A stretch of 63,289 nucleotides of DNA, counting the filler, from Octopus bimaculoides (lineage: Eukaryota): the NCBI RefSeq assembly GCF_001194135.2. It is 7 parts of 7 records of this genome, joined end to end, with 100 filler letters (N's around TTAATTAATTAA, not from the genome) between each part and the next. Parts side by side here need not be neighbours in the genome. Positions count along the whole stretch, not along the records: positions 53,025 to 58,545 come from NC_068985.1; 6 more parts are not named here. One strand, 5' to 3'. The notes beneath the pieces are model-generated. The model was not told where the DNA came from. It did no database searches and was given only the letters and a program-made list of their open reading frames with translations. Both the position numbers and the translations under genes were made by a program. This document shows, piece after piece, positions 2,313-58,545 of this stretch; positions within the stretch are counted from its first letter, which is position 1, and each line of letters opens with the position of its first letter.

Positions 2313-3974
2313 TACATACTTACATAAATACATATATACATGCATACGTATGCTGATTATTCTGAAGGTATTTTAACTACCTTTCTAAGATATACATACA
2401 ATATTTCTCTGTAAAACATGTAGTGAGCGATTCATTTCTCTCTCCACTACTGGTCAATTTATTTAGAAAAATCTATTAGGAAATCTGCTATATATTGCGG
2501 GGCTGAAAGTCCATAGTTGCAAAGTAGCTGAAGAGGTGAACAATTACCTCAATTACTAGTTGCTTCTCGAACGATAACGTATTTACGAATCATAGCAGCA
2601 GCGACCTGGGAGTACTGATGCCCTTTCAATAGTTCATGTGTATGAATTTACTACTACTTCTACTACTACTACTACTACTACTACCTCTGATGCTGCTTCT
2701 GCTGTTGCTATGTATCATTACTACACATACCATTGATAAAAACACAATTTAACCAAAGCAAGGTAAAGTGGAGTGAAACATATCTATCTATCGTATCAGG
2801 TCTTTCTTTCTTTCTGTATTTCTTTCTTTCTTTCGGTATTTCTTTGTACACACACACACAGAACAGACCACATAATTTTTTTCTAATATTTATTAGGATC
2901 ATATATTTATTTCTTTGCTTGGCTATCTTTATATTTGATTGTATTTTGCATCTCCAAGTTTCGATTGTCACTACAATTCAGATAGGATTTTATGAATTTC
3001 AGGATTTATCTCTACGTCTTTGATTTGTAATGTGGAAACAAAAACCAAAAACTAAAAAAGAAAACAAAAGAAAACAAAACAAACGAAAGAAAATACGTAT
3101 AAATGTCAAATCCACAAATAAATATCTAAAGTAACAAAATACATAAAATTAACCATCAAACAGAAAAAAAGTATATAAATAAAATAAATTTTAAAAATCT
3201 CCCCAATAATATTGCAACAACAAATGAAAAGATACAAACACGAAGGCAAAAAATAAATTTCCGAACAAATCGAATCTTTGTTAGAACAAAACTTACTCAT
3301 TGAAGATGTTTTCTTTATAGTTATTTCTATCGCTCATAAATCGTGTTTATTTCTTTCTTTTTATCCATCGTTAATTTATAATTTGTTTATTTATGTATTT
3401 TATTATCGATCAATTTATCAAAATCTTTTATTTTTGTCTCTATTATTTCAGATTTCGATTTGAATTAATTTTGGATTAAATTTCTCTGTGATAATTTTGA
3501 AGGTTGCCGTGACATTAAGGTTATTGGAATAAATCTAAAATTAGAGGGTGAAGCCAATGGCTGGAGTTATAGCAGTAGAACGTTGGACTAAAGGACTTAA
3601 GAGTATTAGAATTTCCCTCCTTGCCGCTACATATTTCTCTCATCTCTTGTAGCTCAAGCGTAAGATGAATTCAGTCCAGCAAGCGAATGTTATACCATTA
3701 TTTATACATACTTACAGTTGCTTCTAATTCTGCCGTAAATCCTGCCACAGTAGGCACTGAACTTCAATGTAATAAACTGAGAAAATAAATACCAGTAATA
3801 TATTGCTGGTTTCGCGTAGGAATCGGGCTTGACCACTGTGACAGAGTATTCCTTCTCCTAGACAGACTGCCAGCCAAGGCTCACGAGTTCTGTCTACCCA
3901 TTTTCGGAATGGCCATTGACTCTTTTAAGTTCCTACGCTCTTTACTGCGGGACAAACAAGAATGCCTAATAATC

Positions 3975-4365
3975 GACGAAAGAGAAAAAGTTGAGAAATA
4001 CTGAGAATTGAGATCGCTAAGATGTGGCAGCTACGAGAGTCGAACATAAAGGTTATCCCAATTGTCATCGGAGCATTGGGTTCAATACTACCCAATGTGA
4101 AAAAAAAAAGCATCTGAAAATCTTAGAAATACCCTACAATCTAGATGTATTGCAAAGGTTGGTATTACTTCGATCTGTACGCATATTGCGTACAATACTG
4201 TCTGTCTAAGGTCCTTGTTGTGATTTGACAAACAGTAAAAACGCCTGGTAGACACAATATCTTCAATCAACAACCTCACGATATTGTATATCGTGCGAAG
4301 TCTATAATAATAACGACGACAACAACAACAACAACAACAACAGCAACAACAACAACAACAACAAC

Positions 4366-4413
<48 letters not shown>

Positions 4414-4440
4414 TATTATTATTATTATCATTATTGAATT
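3975..4440 (+). mobile_element. R4/Dong-like 3' terminal fragment with (AAC)n(AAT)n tail
   Basis: LRIEIAKMWQL...KVIPIVIGALGS...VLQRLVLLRSVRILRTILSV* then UTR and microsatellite tail. Confidence 0.75.
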
Positions 4441-5060
4441 AAAATATAAATCTAAATAAAATCAACTCCTTTGCCTTTCTATATTGTAGTGTATTCTAAC
4501 ACCTTATGTGTGGAAATTCCATGGCTATTTTGAAAACTATGAAATTGTTGGAACTAATAGAAAAATCTAAAGAGGATTATTTCATTTTGAAACAGTATTT
4601 TCTCTGGAATGCTTTGATTCCTTGAGATGGTGTAATGTCAACGTAGCCAACACTAAGAGTTAGTCTTTGGAGAAAACATCATTGAAACGGTATACTTTGC
4701 TATGCACATATCACTTCTTTTAACTTCAAAGGTTTATCTTTACGTCAACGAGTAAACACTATTAGCTATGATGGAACGAAACAGAAGACACGAAATGTCT
4801 ATAAGAATTTTCTACTAGAGTACGTTTGTATCAGTAAAGCTTTGCAAAAGCTTAATATTCTATTCTGCATCTTTACTTTCATATAAAAGAATTTGCATAC
4901 GGATGGTGTTGAAACTCATAGTCACAGTGAGCAAAGTACCATTGAGCTGTGCATAACATATATCTATCTATCTCCCTATCTATCTATCTGTCTGTCTGTC
5001 TGTCTGTACGAGTGTGTGTGTGTGTGCGCTCGTGTATTTATTTATGTATGTATGTTTGTA

Positions 5061-5118
<58 letters not shown>

Positions 5119-5386
5119 GATATATATATTAAACAGGCAGGGCTGTCTTGTTGACAAATTCTTTTTCACAATCACATAGCTTCGGGGTCGGTCACTCAGT
5201 TTCTCTATGGACAAGTGTCTCCATTGTAGCCTTGGATTCACTAATATCTTGTGATGAAACGTTATATCGTTACCTTGTTAGTCCGAAAAACCATACGGAC
5301 GGCCATTGTATATCCTTATGCATGTACATGCTGATGTTTATATAAGTGTATCTATTATGTTTATATCGCAATAAACCTGTATGTTA

Positions 5387-5830
5387 AGGCGGTGAGCTGG
5401 CAGAAACGTTAGCACGCAGGGTGAAATGATTAGCGGTATTTCATCTCTCTTTACGTTCGGAATTCAGATTCCGCCGAGGTCGATTTTGCCTTTCATCCTT
5501 TCGAGGTCAATAAATAAAGTACCAGTTTCATACTGGGGGGTCGATCTAATCGATTGGCCCCCTTCTCCAAAACATTCGGGTCTTGTGCCTAGAGTAGATA
5601 AAAAAAACTTGTTTGTAGTTTTGTTCTAATATATTGCACACTCAAGGTGGCGAGTTGGTAGAATCCTTAGCATTTCATCCGTCTTTATGTTCTGAGTTCA
5701 AATTCCGCCGAGGTCGACATTGCTTTTCATCCTTTCGAGCTTGATGAAATCAGTACCAGTTGAAAACTGGGGTCGATGTGATCGAGTTACCTCCTCCCCA
5801 AATTGCTGGCCTTGTGCCAAAATTTGAAAC
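5387..5830 (+). mobile_element. Two tandem SINE family B copies (GGCGGCGAGCTGGCAGAA head, Meta-like CTTTCATCCTTTCG.GGTCGATAAA domain)
   Basis: Copies at about 5387-5600 and 5646-5830. Superfamily name is from memory. Confidence 0.8.
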
Positions 5831-6388
5831 CAGTATATTGAACACCCTGTATTGTATTGAATAATTAAATTTTTGTTCATACAGATCACACATTCACATG
5901 CATGCACAGGCTCACATATATGCACTTTTCTGAGACAACTATGCATATGATAGTTAAAGAGTGCATTCCCTATCGATTTGAAAGGTGAACACTCATGCGT
6001 TTGACCAAGCGTTTCTGCCTTGTGGAATTAGCGTCTTATTGGCTGACTATGCATTGATGCATTGATACATGTTTCTTAATGCAATTCTCGGATAGAATTA
6101 GCGTAACGCAATGTGTAGAAGCTAGAAAGAGAGAAAGAGAGAAAGAAAGAAAGAGAGAGAGAGAGAGTGAAAGAGTGAGTTTGGGTTACCACTGTTGGAC
6201 TGGTGTGGTTCTGAAGTGTATCAAACAAATCCTCTCAAGACCATTAAGTCGTCTTGAAAGTATGAAATAAATTGGACTCGGTGGAATTTGAAATTAACAT
6301 ACAGAACGATGGAAAGAACGGAACAAATACCACAAGGAACTTCTCATTCAACTCACTAACCAATTTTCCAAAGCTCCGGCTTGTTTTC

Positions 6389-6444
<56 letters not shown>

Positions 6445-6632
6445 ATGTTTAGNNNNNNNNNNNNNNNNNNNNNNNNNNNNNNNNNNNNNNNNNNNNNNNN
6501 NNNNNNNNNNNNNNNNNNNNNNNNNNNNNNNNNNNNNNNNNNNNNNNNNNNNNNNNNNNNNNNNNNNNNNNNNNNNNNNNNNNNNNNNNNNNNNNNNNNN
6601 NGTATACGTATATATTTACATACAGACATACA

Positions 6633-6713
<81 letters not shown>

Positions 6714-9700
6714 ATGTTTAGTAGGTAGTCAGTCGTAACATGACTGTTTAAGTTGTATTTAACTTTTTTCTCCCTTTCACTCTCTCAATACTCTCCCTTA
6801 TCCATCCACTCCTTCAATCTTTCGCCTCCCTCCCTCCCGCACTCATTCTCCTCCTTACATACCCACACACTGACAGCTGATACACGTTTAGTATGTAATT
6901 GATGTTAAGTTGAAATGGCTTTTCCTGGGTCATCAATAGAAAGATAGATCTCCATGCATCAACGCTGGACTTCTAAGAGGGTTAGCTTGTATGAATTTCA
7001 CTACAGTTTTGCTGTAAAACTCATGAAAGAATAGAAGATCAAAGCCTACGCTGTTTCCATATGAGCTGTCACTTAAATTTCATGATTCAGAAATTCTAAG
7101 TTTATAAACAGTTATATGTCTAATACTATTTCGTACTTTCACCTTCATAGCTATTTTCTTTATTTATTTGAACTAAAGTCTTTTTATCATCAAAATAAAT
7201 AATAATCAGTCTATAAAGTTAATGCTATGATGGAAAGAAATGCCAGCAACCAGGATTTAGTGAGCTACATTTATCTGAAAATAACAGTTACAAGTTAATG
7301 AAGACAGATGATGTTAAAGCAATATTACACTCGAAGATGGCACCTGAACAGCATAGAAAGTAACAGCAGACAGAGCATAACGAATTCGCTATTAAAAGAA
7401 GTAATTACTAATCGAAGGTGGGTCATCAAGTTAAATCTGAGACACGCCAATAAGATACCAGGCTACTGGCTAAAAAAAACCCGACAATTCTCGTGATCTG
7501 CCAATGCTGTACTGTGTTCATAAAGATATTTCACTCAATTCTACGACGAAATGTTATGCAAGTTGACCGTTCTAAGAACCCTCAGGCTTCTTAGAATGGT
7601 TAGCAGATGTATCCTTAGCTTGTTTCAAACAGCTCGAATCCTGTCTCTTTGTAGATAACTCGAAATCAACCTAGTGTTTTTATCATTCCATTTGAACATA
7701 TCATTTCACATACATTGGAATTTCATTTGTCTTCCAACGATTGAATTGTACGTGGTAAAATTACTTATTCATAATCAAATCCATAACATCCACTTGAGCG
7801 GTACCTCTCCAGTTTGCGTATGCGCATGTGTACATTGAACAATGTACAAGATATTTCTTTAATATTTCAATATTTACTCAAGTATAAAACAGATATCAAA
7901 TTTATAAATATCATAAAAATAGCTGTGAAGAGTCGATCATAACAAAACCTATAATTTCTTTCTATTTTGTTGTACAAAGATTTATTAAACAGAAAAATAA
8001 TTTACATGTTTATATGCATGATAGGGAGAAAATTCTAGGATTTAATGAGTGTATGGGATATAGGTAAAACACGTACTATATATTGGCTAAGATTCAAAAC
8101 AACCTCCATATCAAGTGTGTGTTTGCATAAATATTCCAATGGGAAGTTTGTACTTTAGTTTAAGGTAACTAATACAGGAATCTTTATATTAAGAGTTTTA
8201 TGGTTTACATCATACTGCTTTCGTATTTATACTTTCTCTGGTCTGAGTATTCTCATCTATCGTGTATCGCTTTGTTCAAAAAGGAAACCCACGTATTCGC
8301 CGTCTGATTCTACATTAATCAGCGATATAATATGAAAAAAATAGAATTGAAATTAATTTGGAGTGATCAACCTAGACAAATATTGTACAGTGAACTTTGT
8401 GATTATATAAATTTGTATCAGGTCGGACATGAGGAATATGACGTTTAAGGGGAGACCCTTCATCTGAGGAGAAAGAAATTTCAATGAAGAGGCTTAGATG
8501 GCAATTAAGATATATAAATAAGAGAATGTAAGGAGATGCAGGTAAATAATGTATGAATTAAATGTTGCTAAAGGGAAAAAGCAATTAATAAATTAATTAT
8601 TTGTAATGTCAACACAAAGGTTAGTGTCTTTGTCTGTGTATGTATACATGAGTTTGTGGTTGAGTGTGTGCGTGTAAATGTATGTATATGAGTGGTGTGT
8701 ACGCTTGTATATGTTTCTCCGTGCATGTGTTTGTGTGTATGCATGTACATGAGCGCATGTTTGGGTGTCCACTATAAATACAAGGAAATGGGTTTGTAGC
8801 TAGAAATCGTCGGACGTAGCTGATCAATGCTTGTTTGTATAGGCGTGTGTGATTATGTGTATGCGGCTATGTATCTATGTGTGTGCCAGTATCTGTATGC
8901 TAGAATGTGTGTGTGTGTGTTTGTGCGCGCACCTGCATGTGTATGCGCGCGGGTGGTGTTGCTCGTGTAGGAACGACGAAAATGATCGCACGTTTGTGCA
9001 TGAAAGTATATAAGCATAAAGTACCAAGTCTGCGTATGGAAATACCGAAGACATTTCTATGAGTGTGGAACTATAAAACCGGTGTGTCGAATATACCAAA
9101 TATATAATGTATTTTGTCTATTATTTAATGAAGGGTGCTATACTTTTATTAAAAATTAGTTCAAATTTCATTTTGTTATTTAAATGAAATGTAAATTTTA
9201 CTATTGAGTTTTGAATCAATAAGAATAGAGAGAAAATTACAAAGGAGCAGCTGATGAAAAAAATAACTGTACATTTTGTTGGTTCGTCCACCGACTCAGT
9301 CACTCACAGTCCACTGTGCATTCATATTTTAATTAGAATGCTCCAAACCACCAAAATATTCTGGGTAATGCAGGAATGCCACAAATTCTGAAAATCACCG
9401 TTGCCGACGAATTCAGACTTCACAAACAATTGCGGATAATTCTACACACACACACANNNNNNNNNNNNNNNNNNNNNNNNNNNNNNNNNNNNNNNNNNNN
9501 NNNNNNNNNNNNNNNNNNNNNNNNNNNNNNNNNNNNNNNNNNNNNNNNNNNNNNNNNNNNNNNNNNNNNNNNNNNNNNNNNNNNNNNNNNNNNNNNNNNN
9601 NNNNNNNNNNNNNNNNNNNNNNNNNNNNNNNNNNNNNNNNNNNNNNNNNNNNNNNNNNNNNNNNNNNNNNNNNNNNNNNNNNNNNNNNNNNNNNNNNNNN

Positions 9701-53024: not shown

Positions 53025-53414
53025 CCAAAATATTGTCGTCGCTTTGGGACTGCGACCTGTTCATTGATGCAGCATGGAATTTTGTCAGTGAACAGGTCGT
53101 GGTCTCAAAGCGACGAAAATATTTTGACAAATTAAATTTAAATGTTGAAGCACAGAATTTTGTCAGTGAACAGGTCGCAGTCTCAAAGCGACGAAAATAT
53201 TTTGGCAAATTAAATTTAACACACAAAAACCGTTAGATTCACTTCGACATTTAAATTTAATTTGCCAAAATATTGTCGTCGCTTTGGGACTGCGACCTGT
53301 TCATTGATGCAGCATGGAATTTTGTCAGTGAACAGGTTGTGGTCTCAAAGCGACGAAAATATTTTGGCAAATTAAATTTAAATGTTGAAGTGAATCTAAT
53401 GGTTTTTTGTGTGT
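53025..53414. repeat. Palindromic foldback units; the complete unit at 53219-53414 has about 90-bp arms
   Basis: ACACAAAAACCGTTAGATTCACTTCGACATTTAAATTTAATTTGCCAAAATATT... pairs with ...AATATTTTGGCAAATTAAATTTAAATGTTGAAGTGAATCTAATGGTTTTTTGTGT. Partial copies at 53025-53220. Confidence 0.85.
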
Positions 53415-53783
53415 TTCCTAAATGACTTATAAACACCTTCCACGCTGCAAATGTGAATGAATAAGCATTATATTCGACAGAATAATCTGAATGCTTAAGG
53501 GTTAGACCGGCCATACCTGGCCAAAATATATTCTACTTGTTTCCTGTTCAAGCCTGCCTGAGCCAGCCTCTCACACCAACTTACAATCCTACAATGTCAT
53601 TCTAAAAGCAAATAATCACATGTTTAAAGTCTTGAGGCTACGAGACAATGCATGATTAATTCAAAGCAGTGTAAATAAATATTACATTTGACAGACAGAG
53701 GAATCTGAATGCTAAAAAGTTAAGAACTTCACTTAACAACCACGTGGTTTCAGGTTCATTCCCACTGCATGACTACTTTGGGA

Positions 53784-54041
53784 ATGAAGTAGTTGTATGC
53801 TGTCAACTTAATATGACAGTCCCCTGAAGGGACTGTTGGTTAGACCTAGGATGACGAGCAAAGACTCAGAGACATGTCTCTGGATGCAGGCTTAGCTGGG
53901 TGGAGGTGCTTGTCTCCCCTTTGTAAACATAAGGACACAGGAAATGTGTCAAGGCCGACTGGAAGCGGTGCAATGATGAACAGTAGTATTATTCCCTTCA
54001 GGGGACTGTCACATTAAGTTGACAGCATACAACTACTTCAT
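53784..54041. mobile_element. MITE with about 49-bp terminal inverted repeats
   Basis: 53784-53832 and 53993-54041 are reverse complements with 1 mismatch. Confidence 0.75.
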
Positions 54042-54420
54042 CGTATCACTACTACATAAATCTCTCTGAGAGATTTAGAAATGTATTATTTCTACTTTGG
54101 GAATGTCCTTCATCATGGCCTCATTAAGCCCAAGGCCTTTTGAATGAAATCTGGTTGGTGGAAACTGTGTGGCACCCCTTCCCATAAAAAACACCCTCAT
54201 TAAAACTGGAGCAATGTGAAATGAAGTGTTTTGTTCAAGAACACAATACACCATCTGATTCAGGATTTGAAACCACAATCTTGCAATCATGAGTGCAACA
54301 CCTTAACCTCTAGGCCATGTACATTTACAGTAAAATAATAAAAGATGGGGGAGGGATCAAGATTTGAAAGTTGTTGCAAGTTTTATAATAATTGCGTGTT
54401 TGGTGATTTCCATTTTATAG

Positions 54421-54605
54421 ATTTTAGTTCCGATACTGGAGGGGAAGAAAATGAAGAACCTGAGAGTGCAGCAAAAAAGAGTAAGAAAAGTCCATCTAGA
54501 AGCAAGACCAAAGAAAACAGAGAGACGACAGATAAAAAAGAAACTAACCGGAACCAGAACAAGCGTGAACAGATTGTGGGATTACTGGGGAAGCTCAGCC
54601 ACACC
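54421..54605 (+). CDS. Probable upstream exon of the GTF2I-repeat gene: acidic then Lys/Arg/Ser-rich segment (DFSSDTGGEENEEPESAAKKSKKSPSRSKTKENRETTDKK...)
   Basis: TTTTATAG acceptor at 54420; purine-rich open frame; two GTAAGA donors, after 54480 (phase 1) and after 54605 (phase 0). The true end is uncertain, and an in-frame ATG at 54345 is an alternative start. Confidence 0.55.
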
Positions 54606-56402
54606 GTAAGATCCATTTCCATCATCATCATTATCATCATCAGTTAAAGCATTTGAATATTGCAATGTTTTTAAGAACCGCTTAGAATTATGTGATGAAA
54701 TAATTGCTTAACTGATTGAGTCCTGTTGTTACTGTTCTTGTTTATGTTTGTTCATTAGCCCCACTCAGTTCTGTTCTGTCGTAACAAATATTTTAGATGG
54801 GAACACTACTGCATTGTCCTGTTGCTGTTGTTTTGCATAAATCTTCAATGTTGTGGAACTGAGCTGATCTCAGATGTTCAAAACATTAAGATTTCTTTGG
54901 TCTTGGTGTTATGGACGTCTTAGACATACTACAGTAGCAGCAGGACAGTGCTGCCCTCTCCAGACCCATCATAGCAGTTGGTCACAGTGTTGTCAGCTAA
55001 TAAGTCATTTGTCACTTATATTCTATTATTGATGCTACTTACTGCAGTAATTTATTTTTTTATCTCATGGTAGCTATTTTCAGCTAAGGCAACTGATCAT
55101 TTGCGAGTTACACCTATCTTGAACATGAATGCCATGCTCTGCAGGTGGCTGGAAATGAACCACCAACCACCCTGCTGGTTGTTTGTTATCCTATCCACTT
55201 TGCCATCTACATTTTCATAAAAGAAATATGAACTATTACCCAGGGAATCCATGCAATGATCTTCTTTACCATTTATAACCAAAGTGCTTTACTATCTGAG
55301 CCAATTCCCCAACTGATAATGCTATACCATAGATGCACTAACACGAAACATAATCATACATATACTGATTCACTCAACTTTAGGATTGGTTTGTTTGTTG
55401 TTTTTGTTCCTGTTTCTTTCTACTTTTTTTTTTTTCATGTCTTCCTAATTAATTACTGAACTGTTCCTATTATAAATTATTTTTAGTGTTCATCATTGTC
55501 ATCTCTTGGTGTTGAAACTGCCTGTCTAGCTGTCAACAAACCAGTTGTTTTCACACTAGGTAGTAAATATGGTACAAACTTCCTTAAAAAAGAAAAGCAA
55601 TTACAGAACAAATTTCTTGCCTACTTAGGTTGGTATTCATTTAAGATACATTTTTTTTTCTTTTTGTTTTGTTTTTTCCTTGGATTGTAACAAAAGGACG
55701 AAGGAAGCATTTTTATGTGTATTCTAGAACAAACGCCACCTTTGATTTTGGAACTTGCACAAAACTAGAGTCATTAATTCTATGTGATATCTTCATTTCT
55801 TTTTTGTTGGTAATGGAGTAAAAGATAATAAAATGAAGCCTAGTTTTATGAACCTGTGGCTGAACCAGGATTCTTGACATTAGGAATAAGCATTTTATTT
55901 AGCTTCTTTTGTTGACATTTTTTTAATTATTGAGGTAAGAATATTTACTATTAAACTATTGATTATATATGCATAAGTTCAGATCTTACTGAAACCACTG
56001 TTACATACTCTAAGCAAGGCTTATAACTCTACTTCTCACAGTTAATCTGCTTCACAAAACCCTGTAGCTCACCATTTCAATTCCTCGGGCCACTGCCTCC
56101 ACCATCTACCATTATTGCCATTATTTTGTGTAACAATTCTTCAGTTTTTATCTTTCCTATTCACTGTTTTGTCTCTCAGAGAAAAGAGAAATATATCCAA
56201 AACATTGATGGCTTTACTTTTCCTTATTACAGAAATTTCCTTAAAAAAGAAAAACAATTAACTGCATTTATTTTTATTACTTATTTCCTTTGAATTATTA
56301 ATAAAATAGTTTGTTTCATACAGCTTTAGTTAATTAAATCACTCACACTATAAACTGTGATCTGTATAGACTGAAAATATTCTCTTCTTTTATTTGTTTC
56401 AG

Positions 56403-56480
56403 CCAAGGGCAAAGATCAGCCCAAAAACAACCGTAAGAAGCTTGCAGAAGAAGTGAAGGCCTTATTCAATGAGAAGTTTT
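56403..56480 (+). CDS. GTF2I-like repeat gene exon: basic linker plus first helix of the I-repeat (KGKDQPKNNRKKLAEEVKALFNEKF)
   Basis: TTTGTTTCAG acceptor and T|GTGAGT donor; phase 1-1. LAEEVKALFNEKF matches the I-repeat start [13 protein letters not shown]. Confidence 0.85.
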
Positions 56481-57224
56481 GTGAGTCCATTTTCATAAAC
56501 ACTTTGTTTCAGATTTATAAAAGAGCCACACCCACACACTCAAATTACATCTTATCATTTGAGGAGGGGAAAAAAAAAAGAAGGAAACATTACATGATGT
56601 TGCACTTGAGCTTGATGAATGCCCAGTTTGAGAAGCACTGAGGTAGAGGGTCCTTCTTTCGCTATGAACTGTGACTCTGATTACTGGAAGAGATCAAAAT
56701 TGTAAACTTGGTACTGGAATCCTTAAAGCAGTCTAGTGAATTCCCAGTATTACTCTGACAACTCCTGCATCTCAACACAAATACCAAACTGTATTAGAAC
56801 CTATCCTTTTAAATTACATCAGTGGTGAAGAGAGTATGAACCTATTTCAGTTTTCATTTAGGCATATTGAGTCATTTGATAGTAAAGTATGCTTATATTG
56901 CATTATTCTACAAGGCTGCATTACTAGTAATCACCAAAATACCTATTAAATTTGGTAGGTGGAGTCCAGTTTTAAAAGAGAAAACGTAAAAAATATTTTG
57001 GAAGGTAAAATAGCTCCATTTGAAATTTCTGATCTTGGCTTTCATACTTACTGAAATTGGTTCACCTTCATATTAATTTCTGGTTTCCCTCAACAGTATT
57101 TACACACCTAATAATCTTGGCAATATTCAACTTTTAAAACTGTTAATCTTCCACTTTCACTCTTCTCCTTATCTATATATCTATCTATTCTGCTTACTTA
57201 TTTTCTTATTCTTTTTGCTACCAG

Positions 57225-57402
57225 CTTTATGTTGCGGCAGTACTCGGACCATGCCATATGTTAAACTGGAAAAAGATCCTATGTTTATCGACATTGAAGG
57301 CTTCCCAGATGGCATTATCCTAAAAAGACCACAATCCTATGGAATATCGGATCTTCGGAAAATTTTAAATGCTTCTGAAAAAATCCAGTTTCACCTAAAG
57401 AA
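57225..57402 (+). CDS. GTF2I-like repeat (PF02946-type) core exon (SLCCGSTRTMPYVKLEKDPMFIDIEGFPDGIILKRPQSYGISDLRKILNASEKIQFHLKK)
   Basis: Pyrimidine tract plus CCAG acceptor and AA|GTAAGT donor; 178 nt, phase 1-2. Carries the I-repeat motifs PY, EG(L/F)P(E/D)GI, RP(S/Q)(T/S)YGI, L..IL.A.E.I.F..KK. Confidence 0.9.
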
Positions 57403-57834
57403 GTAAGTTATGCTGCTTAAAGAAATATTTACCAACATAATATTTGATGTTTGGAAGGGCATCCAACTGTAGAAACTATGCCAAAGCAGGTATTGGAGCT
57501 TGACACTGTATTCTGGCATGTTGGATCCTTTTGAGCCATCCAACTTATGTCAGTCTGAAAAATAGACATTAAATAACAATGACAACTACTACTACTATTA
57601 CAAACATCACCACCACCACTGCCACAGTTATTATTATAGTATCTTCAGTAAGAAAAGGTAGCAAGATTTGGGCACCAAATGTAGAAGTTCTGCAGTGTCT
57701 TGAGGGAAGTAATTTGTATATGATTCATTGTATAAATCTGACATGAGCGACCTTTTTCAAGGGGCCACATTAGAGGTGGCTCCACATTAGGCAGACCATG
57801 CTACTAAACAAAATTTAAGGTAATTTTTCATTAG

Positions 57835-58002
57835 GTGTACCATTCAGAGAGTCCTGTGAGCTGCAGTTTGTCTGTGACTGATGTAAATGTTAACTCACAG
57901 GAGAAACAAAGTGAAAATAGTGTGAAAAAATATTTAGTACTGACAGCATCAGCCAATGTGTCCAAGACAATCAGGTGCACTGATACAGACAATAAATGTT
58001 GA
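57835..58002 (+). other. Possible next or terminal exon of the GTF2I-repeat gene
   Basis: TTTTTCATTAG acceptor. A phase-2 join gives KCTIQRVL* (stop 57857-57859); the phase-0 frame is open for 55 codons; AATAAA at 57991-57996. No homology support. Confidence 0.3.
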
Positions 58003-58028
58003 AGAGTAAGCTCTTTATTTAATGTTGA

Positions 58029-58358
58029 AGGCGCATGGCTCAGTGGTTAGAGTGTCGAGCTTACGATCATTAGGTTGTGAGTTTGATTCCCGGACCGGGC
58101 TGTGTGTTGTGTTCTTGAGCAAGACACTTTATTTCATGTTGCTCCAGTTAACTCAGCCGTAGAAATGAGTTGTGACATCTCTGATGCCAAGCGGTATCGG
58201 CCTTTGCCTTTCCCTTGGATAACATCAGTGGTGTGGAGAGGGGAGGCTGGTATGCATGGACGACTGTTGGTCTGCCATAAAAAACCTTGCCCGGACTTGT
58301 GCATCGGAGGGTAACTTTCTAGGTGCAATCCTAGGGTCATTCATGACCGAAGGGGGTC
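58029..58358 (+). mobile_element. tRNA-derived SINE family C-related copy
   Basis: GGCGCATGGCTCAGTGGTTAGAG...GTTCTTGAGCAAGACACTT; reverse fragment at about 54190-54320. Confidence 0.8.
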
Positions 58359-58383
58359 TCCTCCTCCTTGTGGACAGTAGCGT

Positions 58384-58545
58384 TCATCATCATCATCGTT
58401 TAACGTCCGCTTTCCATGCTAGCATGGGTTGGACGATTTGACTGAGGACTGGTGAAACCGGATGGCAACACCAGGCTCCAGTCTAATTTGGCAGAGTTTC
58501 TACAGCTGGATGTCCTTCCTAACGCCAACCACTCAGAGAGTGTAG
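58384..58545. mobile_element. Dispersed repeat family E (CATCATC-TTTAACGTCCGCTTTCCATGCT...GGATGCCCTTCCTAACGCCAACC), SINE/RTE-tail-like
   Basis: Homologous segments at about 40990-41270, 43215-43340 and 44440-44680, and reversed at 43515-43700. Confidence 0.65.

Follow-up and report, generated by a model that had tools for sequence, protein, structure and literature searches.

Our data imply that the octopus gene LOC106869674 codes for a relative of the vertebrate TFII-I family and not for a TFII-I look-alike, and that its architecture differs from that of TFII-I, because it combines one I-repeat with a chromodomain. The gene was met in a window of Octopus bimaculoides DNA (the whole stretch that was analysed, 63,289 nucleotides joined from seven parts of the genome), in which positions 53025-58545, from NC_068985.1 and called the piece below, hold some of its exons. 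Judging from sequence comparison, these exons carry the N-terminal module of the family, then a short basic linker and then a single I-repeat. We consider it very probable that the product is a nuclear protein whose module shares a bilaterian ancestor with the N-terminus and first repeat of the vertebrate TFII-I family, and we infer that the module came down from that ancestor by vertical descent. An earlier sequence-only reading of this DNA had proposed a TFII-I I-repeat gene; the family module stands, but a TFII-I-like architecture of the whole protein does not, given the repeat count of one and the chromodomain.

The piece comes from the interior of LOC106869674, an octopus gene, and the exons in it are genuine. 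The peptide of the exon called B here was searched exhaustively with phmmer against 1.84 billion cluster representatives, which yielded 65 matches (sources were identified for part of these), and over 58 residues it is 100% identical to residues 816-873 of XP_014770978.1 (P0132 below), a protein of 1,242 residues labelled "uncharacterized protein LOC106869674". Every splice junction in the piece reproduces this annotated protein. The gene, 104.6 kb long, lies on a scaffold of 127.5 Mb in the O. bimaculoides assembly GCA_001194135.2, and contamination is therefore excluded; the exon-1 peptide DFSSDTGGEENEEPES fits O. bimaculoides and neither O. vulgaris nor O. sinensis. Both facts agree with the earlier reading of the DNA as apparently cephalopod. 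The exons and the introns between them are as follows, with a slash marking each border:

54421-54605, + strand: exon of 185 nt, phase 1 at the start (G/AT, which is Asp680 of P0132) and phase 0 at the end, residues 680-741 of P0132
54606-55486, + strand: intron of 881 nt, phase 0, GT..AG, whose splicing restores P0132
55487-55628, + strand: exon of 142 nt, phase 1 at the end, core of the N-terminal region of TFII-I/GTF2IRD1 type (CSSLSSLGVETACLAVNKPVVFTLGSKYGTNFLKKEKQLQNKFLAYL), residues 742-788 of P0132
55629-56402, + strand: intron of 774 nt, phase 1, ACTTAG/GTTGGT ... TGTTTCAG/CC
56403-56480, + strand: exon A, 78 nt, phase 1 to phase 1, ...TTTCAG/CC...TTTT/GTGAGT
56481-57224, + strand: phase-1 intron of 744 nt that interrupts the I-repeat, TTTT/GTGAGT ... 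CTACCAG/CT
57225-57402, + strand: exon B, 178 nt, phase 1 to phase 2, remainder of the I-repeat, (S)LCCGSTRTMPYVKLEKDPMFIDIEGFPDGIILKRPQSYGISDLRKILNASEKIQFHLK(N), ...ACCAG/CT...AAGAA/GTAAGT

The 185-nt exon, an exact match to P0132 with the donor CACACC/GTAAGA, codes for an acidic/basic low-complexity linker and, from about 54561, for the first part of the N-terminal region of TFII-I type (KREQIVGLLGKLSHT). Exon A codes for the basic linker (AKGKDQPKNNRKK) and, from about 56441, for the first I-repeat helix (LAEEVKALFNEKF).

Exons A and B had been proposed by the sequence-only reading as two in-frame exons, and their AG and GT borders and their junctions are indeed those of P0132. They join in one frame as ...KKLAEEVKALFNEKF-S-LCCGSTRTMPYVKLEKDPMFIDIEGFPDGIILKRPQSYGISDLRKILNASEKIQFHLK, the spliced reading being KGKDQPKNNRKKLAEEVKALFNEKF-S-LCCGSTRTMPYVKLEKDPMFIDIEGFPDGIILKRPQSYGISDLRKILNASEKIQFHLK. 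Compared with the Pfam model PF02946 (GTF2I-like repeat; gathering cut-off 27 bits), the spliced peptide scored 63.7 bits (E 2e-17) across profile positions 2-75 of 75, and the full-length P0132 scored 56.6 bits. A phmmer search of all PDB chains returned only GTF2I-domain structures, ten of them, with 2dzq from GTF2IRD1 as the best (E 1.4e-11) and 2e3l from GTF2IRD2 also among them. The single gap of two residues that had been read from the sequence is present in all five of the PDB alignments printed, including that of 2dzq, and the human GTF2I repeat to which the peptide had been aligned occurs verbatim in the database proteins P0015, P0129 and P0130. In comparison with five solved repeats, 12 columns are invariant (L, V, LF, G, P, P, G.P, P, L, I) at an identity of 35-41%.

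The AlphaFold2 (AF2) model of the module encoded in the window has a mean pLDDT (predicted local distance difference test) of 84.3 and consists of two predicted sub-domains, one built as helix, beta-hairpin and two helices, the other being the I-repeat; the predicted helix 71-93 falls in exon A. When the model was compared with the PDB by Foldseek, the best ten matches were all GTF2I-domain structures solved by nuclear magnetic resonance, with template-modelling (TM) scores (target) of 0.64-0.75 and root-mean-square deviations of 1.5-2.1 A over 75-76 residues. The predicted I-repeat fold, helices with a short two-stranded sheet, is thus that of the solved GTF2I domains, and the earlier I-repeat call was borne out by this prediction as well as by the PF02946 score. 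The next Foldseek match after the ten GTF2I domains is the NRF1 homodimer-DNA complex (8k4l; E 0.026, probability 0.8, TM 0.31), which hints, though weakly, at a possible likeness between the N-terminal module with its repeat and the DNA-binding and dimerisation unit of NRF1. A word-indexed protein search gave no match to the 194-residue spliced peptide, and with I-repeat profiles gave only fragments of <135 residues; it is uninformative, as it misses the exact match to P0132. An exact look-up of the ATG-started open reading frame (ORF) of exon B found no record.

The exons 54421-54605 and 55487-55628 together encode ...NKREQIVGLLGKLSHT/CSSLSSLGVETACLAVNKPVVFTLGSKYGTNFLKKEKQLQNKFLAYL, a stretch that resembles the N-terminus of TFII-I/GTF2IRD1, as was checked against database sequences. 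In BLASTP it aligns without gaps to residues 27-87 of a vertebrate GTF2IRD1 (P0123), with E 9e-13 and 36% identity over 61 residues, and an hhalign comparison of the cephalopod alignment with seven vertebrate GTF2I/GTF2IRD1 N-termini gave a probability of 96.9 and E 1.8e-10. No Pfam model spans this region. Its vertebrate counterpart is the leucine-zipper or dimerisation region of GTF2IRD1/TFII-I.

The gene structure points in the same direction. The GTF2IRD1 of Takifugu (XP_029703750.1, P0200) was mapped onto its own gene of 9.5 kb (L006) and compared with the octopus. All four introns (4/4) are identical in position and phase and stand in the same columns of the protein alignments:

Intron 1, phase 0: octopus ..GKLSHT/C, Takifugu ..SALDSV/C
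Intron 2, phase 1: octopus ..FLAYL/A, Takifugu ..FYKFC/R
Intron 3, phase 1: octopus ..NEKF/S, Takifugu ..TVLY/S
Intron 4, phase 2: octopus ..FHLK/N, Takifugu ..QFSVN/R

The N-terminal core exon measures 142 nt and has the same phases in both genes. The I-repeat exon of the octopus has 178 nt; those of Takifugu R1, R2 and R3 (repeats are numbered in this way below) have 184 nt each, the extra 6 nt being accounted for by the 2-residue gap. As is the hallmark of the family, the octopus repeat has a phase-1 intron past the [KR][YF] of helix 1 (TTT T/GT..) and ends in phase 2 within the codon that follows the last K (AAG AA/GT). A rough estimate, which assumes a handful of introns in every 170 codons and three possible phases, puts four exact coincidences by chance at ~1e-8.

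The phase-1 intron after KF/KY, which the sequence-only reading had suspected to be shared, is found at the octopus position in Takifugu R1, R2, R3 and R5, in R1, R2, R3 and R5 of a teleost-like locus (L001) and in mammalian-type GTF2I R2; it also occurs in four crinoid repeats and in the annelid Capitella. The vertebrate exon size of 184 nt that was given there is right for Takifugu R1-R3, for L001 and for the mammalian-type contig that holds the exact human GTF2I R2 peptide of that reading, where the exon again has phases 1 and 2. The intron that had been placed in a final KK is of phase 2 as stated, but the split codon AA/x codes for Asn (...FHLK-N-PQPNKKK) and not for Lys. Repeat 4 of teleost GTF2IRD1 (L001 11450-11674; L006 8805-9072) has no internal phase-1 intron, which points to intron loss or to another origin of R4.

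Since the octopus repeat lies directly after the TFII-I-type N-terminal module, it is R1-like by position and not R2-like. The earlier comparison with TFII-I repeat 2 was correct about the basic linker before the repeat; the position is that of R1. By sequence, the octopus repeat is 26-43% identical to vertebrate repeats, closest to R3 and R2 of GTF2IRD1 (42-43%) and at 32-34% to GTF2IRD1 R1. With such values a sequence-based assignment to a single vertebrate repeat was dropped.

One could argue that a protein with this N-terminal module, an I-repeat and four intron positions common to the vertebrate family genes is the octopus TFII-I itself, a strict orthologue and functional equivalent of GTF2I which acts as a signal-induced basal factor binding the initiator (Inr) and the E-box. 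However, it has one repeat in place of five or six, it has in addition a chromodomain, a helix-turn-helix (HTH)-like stretch and very long low-complexity regions, module and repeat are 13 residues apart where vertebrates have about 45, and repeat-by-repeat orthology is not seen. Thus it is not likely that the octopus protein is TFII-I in this strict sense.

The whole protein P0132 begins with a long N-terminal half rich in Ser, Asn, His and Gln, which is followed by the HTH-like stretch, the module encoded in the window, a long low-complexity region and the C-terminal chromodomain. The HTH-like stretch (residues ~600-665, RPVRKCSEFNETQLAFLESQW...ARVKRWIQEY) is conserved in all the cephalopod proteins and matches HTH_23 weakly (E 0.008); a resemblance to the N-terminus of a crinoid I-repeat/zinc-finger protein, seen by eye, was dropped as BLASTP was not significant. 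The chromodomain (PF00385) occupies residues 1202-1239 with 45 bits, and the score is 44-45 bits across octopus, cuttlefish and a contig of a related cephalopod from the Logan collection (L005, SRR27666059). Each of these three has one PF02946 stretch and not several tandem repeats (two to six). No vertebrate member of the TFII-I family is known to have an I-repeat together with a chromodomain.

The 90% cluster of P0132 also includes models of O. vulgaris, named "Chromo domain-containing protein" in UniProt, and of O. sinensis, named "probable serine/threonine-protein kinase ifkA" in RefSeq, a name given because of low-complexity sequence. The cuttlefish model (Acanthosepion pharaonis CAE1255533.1, 791 residues) and L005 are 77% identical in exon B. 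L005 has 2,179 nt and no introns, and it runs without a break over the sites that correspond to the four junctions; since one uninterrupted ORF of 646 residues holds both the GTF2I and the Chromo matches, it is a contig of transcript type. The combination of I-repeat and chromodomain is therefore kept between octopus and cuttlefish and stands on one transcript-type contig. Over 179 aligned codons of octopus and L005 the proportions of non-synonymous and synonymous differences are pN 0.15 and pS 0.76 (the latter saturated), which argues for purifying selection.

These data also bear on the notion that the gene is an artefact, be it vertebrate contamination, an assembly chimera or a decaying pseudogene, for which nothing speaks beyond the reputation of the family as vertebrate-specific. 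The gene lies inside a 127.5-Mb octopus scaffold, repeats that resemble SINEs (short interspersed elements) and MITEs (miniature inverted-repeat transposable elements) occur in its introns and flanks, three Octopus species and the cuttlefish have orthologous models, the frame is open, a relative has a transcript-type contig and pN is far below pS. An artefact is therefore effectively refuted.

I-repeat genes were found in other invertebrates as well. The crinoid Anneissia japonica has a protein named "zinc finger protein 665-like" (XP_033122800.1) with four I-repeats (112 bits in Pfam) followed by C2H2 fingers. In its gene (L007) all four repeats (4/4) have a phase-1 intron after ..KY (AAA TAT G/GTAAAT ... 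GCAG/AG), and the 3' exon border lies about two codons earlier than in octopus, in phase 1. The annelid Capitella teleta has a hypothetical protein (ELT88798.1 / R7T6A0) that matches PF02946 with 80.7 bits; in its locus (L008) the conserved [PS]Y is preceded by a phase-1 intron at a distance of 11 residues, which is exactly the octopus spacing, and a phase-0 intron is in register with the M/C intron of vertebrates and the T/C intron of octopus. An hhalign comparison of the Capitella and vertebrate N-termini was not significant (E 0.014, probability 3%), but the intron register agrees. The Capitella locus (KB311685.1) is, at 3195-8345, a tandem array of near-identical three-exon units, from which the public gene model strings together three copies of the I-repeat exon; this is possible because the exon is symmetric (phase 1-1). 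Divergent single-exon I-repeat ORFs were also seen on three Logan contigs (P0165, P0166 and P0172; PF02946 38-50 bits, 36-39% identical to octopus); none of them matches a named vertebrate protein here, and other invertebrates may be their source.

The cephalopod module, its fold and its four introns, together with the annelid and crinoid genes, date the I-repeat family: it appears to be older than the vertebrates and to go back at least to the bilaterian ancestor. The descent from such an ancestor that the sequence-only reading had suggested is thus supported both by the shared introns and by the finding of invertebrate members in Anneissia and Capitella. Alternatively, the N-terminal region and the I-repeat could have been acquired, having joined a cephalopod chromodomain gene by exon shuffling, by a transposon or by horizontal transfer from a deuterostome. 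Exon A, with phase 1 at both ends, is symmetric and could therefore be shuffled, vertebrate GTF2IRD2 shows that an I-repeat can be fused with a transposase-derived domain, and no mollusc other than cephalopods is among the source-identified matches. Yet Octopus and cuttlefish have the same architecture, annelid and crinoid I-repeat genes carry the same internal intron, an identity of only 26-43% to any vertebrate repeat argues against recent transfer, and an origin via complementary DNA is excluded since the introns are kept. An acquired module is thus very unlikely.

We return to shared ancestry. An ancestral bilaterian gene would have given rise both to the N-terminus and first repeat of the vertebrate TFII-I family and to the octopus module, the positions and phases of four introns being kept in both lines. 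In cephalopods the module lies between the weak HTH-like stretch and the long low-complexity regions, with a chromodomain at the end of the protein. By homology of its domains, the protein would be a nuclear, chromatin-associated regulator of transcription, whose N-terminal module may serve self-association or partner binding, whose I-repeat may contact DNA or a partner, as single repeats of GTF2IRD1 do, and whose chromodomain may read methyl-lysine histone marks.

Several points weigh against this explanation. DNA binding, dimerisation and the reading of histone marks are assigned by homology of the domains. The octopus protein has a single I-repeat and vertebrate family members have two to six. 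The repeat is closer in sequence to R3 and R2 of GTF2IRD1 than to R1, so that only its position and the gene structure speak for its equivalence to R1. Among the source-identified part of the 65 matches there is no homologue from a bivalve or a gastropod, the 59-residue query being unable to reach single-repeat proteins whose identity is much below 40%. The RNA-type evidence comes from a cephalopod relative and not from O. bimaculoides reads. Finally, the chromodomain may be a cephalopod gain or a vertebrate loss, and both it and the HTH-like stretch may be either ancestral or fused to the module in cephalopods.

TFII-I has been described as vertebrate-specific (PMC10721858; PMC9900109), and a survey of transcription factors counted 0 members of the GTF2I family in amphioxus, 0 in C. 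elegans and 1 in a tunicate (PMC8122590). A literature search on invertebrate or cephalopod I-repeat genes and GTF2I found no paper. The octopus gene models and their precomputed PF02946 matches are already public, under uninformative or spurious names; invertebrate I-repeat genes are called "uncharacterized", "ifkA kinase", "myb-like protein V" or "zinc finger protein 665-like", which hides their kinship to the TFII-I family. The protostome branch that the sequence-only reading had called unrecognised is therefore so in names and in the literature, but not in the databases. What is new is a cephalopod architecture within a known I-repeat family, an evolutionary extension and not a new mechanism, by which the common statement on vertebrate specificity is corrected. 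The single-repeat chromodomain protein offers a simpler system for the function of a single I-repeat, and its architecture hints at an ancestral tie to the reading of chromatin.

More tentatively, the cephalopod, annelid and crinoid genes could represent the state of the TFII-I family before the vertebrates, with a chromatin-linked ancestor that had one N-terminal module and one or few I-repeats, which in cephalopods would still be tied to a chromodomain and from which vertebrates would have derived GTF2I and GTF2IRD1 by amplifying the repeats and losing the other domains; we regard this as possible, but would not expect it to prove true. Of the Williams-Beuren genes, TFII-I and GTF2IRD1 have the strongest links to social behaviour and craniofacial development. 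If the proposal held, the label 'vertebrate-specific' would be overturned and a complex-brained invertebrate would be at hand for studying the Williams-syndrome gene family.

The remainder of the piece is intronic and consists of two stretches:

53025-54420, + strand: 3' part of the upstream LOC106869674 intron, holding repeat elements, AG acceptor at 54419-54420
57403-58545, + strand: 5' portion of the following intron, donor GTAAGT, phase 2, containing SINE-like repeats; the exon after it (NPQPNKKK...) is outside the piece

The piece is AT-rich (30-50% G+C) and without long ORFs. Upstream of 54420 it has no protein match, and the preceding exon (..RKRKLSES..) lies outside it. At 53025-53410 there is an array of palindromic MITE-like units, with a 126-nt direct repeat present three times and nested inverted repeats whose arms of 43-83 nt are 86-95% complementary. 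A compact intronic element of MITE-like look at 53784-54041 has terminal inverted repeats of 49 nt, 98% complementary and 160 nt apart. A tRNA-derived SINE-like element occurs in two opposite copies, 58015-58150 (+) and 54200-54340 (-), ~77% identical over ~135 nt, and a repeat fragment is common, in inverted orientation, to 57444-57485 and 58487-58528. ARAGORN found no tRNA in the piece. The Rfam scan of the piece gave only sub-threshold matches to plant miRNA hairpins on the palindromic repeat at 53025-53410, which we attribute to its hairpin shape.

Among known systems, proteins of the HP1/CBX type have the PF00385 chromodomain in common with the octopus protein, in which it is C-terminal and encoded outside the window; a chromoshadow domain or other features of HP1 or Polycomb were not found in octopus. 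Capitella ELT88798.1 is, like the octopus protein, a protostome protein with a PF02946 match, a phase-1 intron at the same distance from [PS]Y and the phase-0 register. In contrast, it is short, stems from a tandem array, has an unclear first repeat helix and lacks a chromodomain. Anneissia XP_033122800.1 is likewise an invertebrate protein whose I-repeats all share the phase-1 intron, but it has four of them, fused to about ten C2H2 zinc fingers, and is without a chromodomain. GTF2IRD2 is a precedent for the fusion of I-repeats with an unrelated C-terminal domain, although this domain is transposase-derived there, the repeats are two and the protein was found only in mammals among the matches here. 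GTF2I/TFII-I differs from the octopus protein in its six repeats, in the TFII-I basic region and nuclear localisation signal before R2 and in a repeat identity of 26-38%, and resembles it in the N-terminal region, the I-repeat fold and the 184-nt exon of R2, whose phase-1 and phase-2 borders fall where they do in octopus. Vertebrate GTF2IRD1 (BEN/MusTRD1; Takifugu XP_029703750.1, P0123) has five I-repeats, neither chromodomain nor HTH-like stretch and a spacer of about 45 residues between module and repeat, which measures 13 residues in octopus. In both proteins, however, a homologous N-terminal region is followed by an I-repeat, and both genes have the 142-nt core exon, I-repeat exons of similar build (184 and 178 nt) and the same four introns in position and phase.

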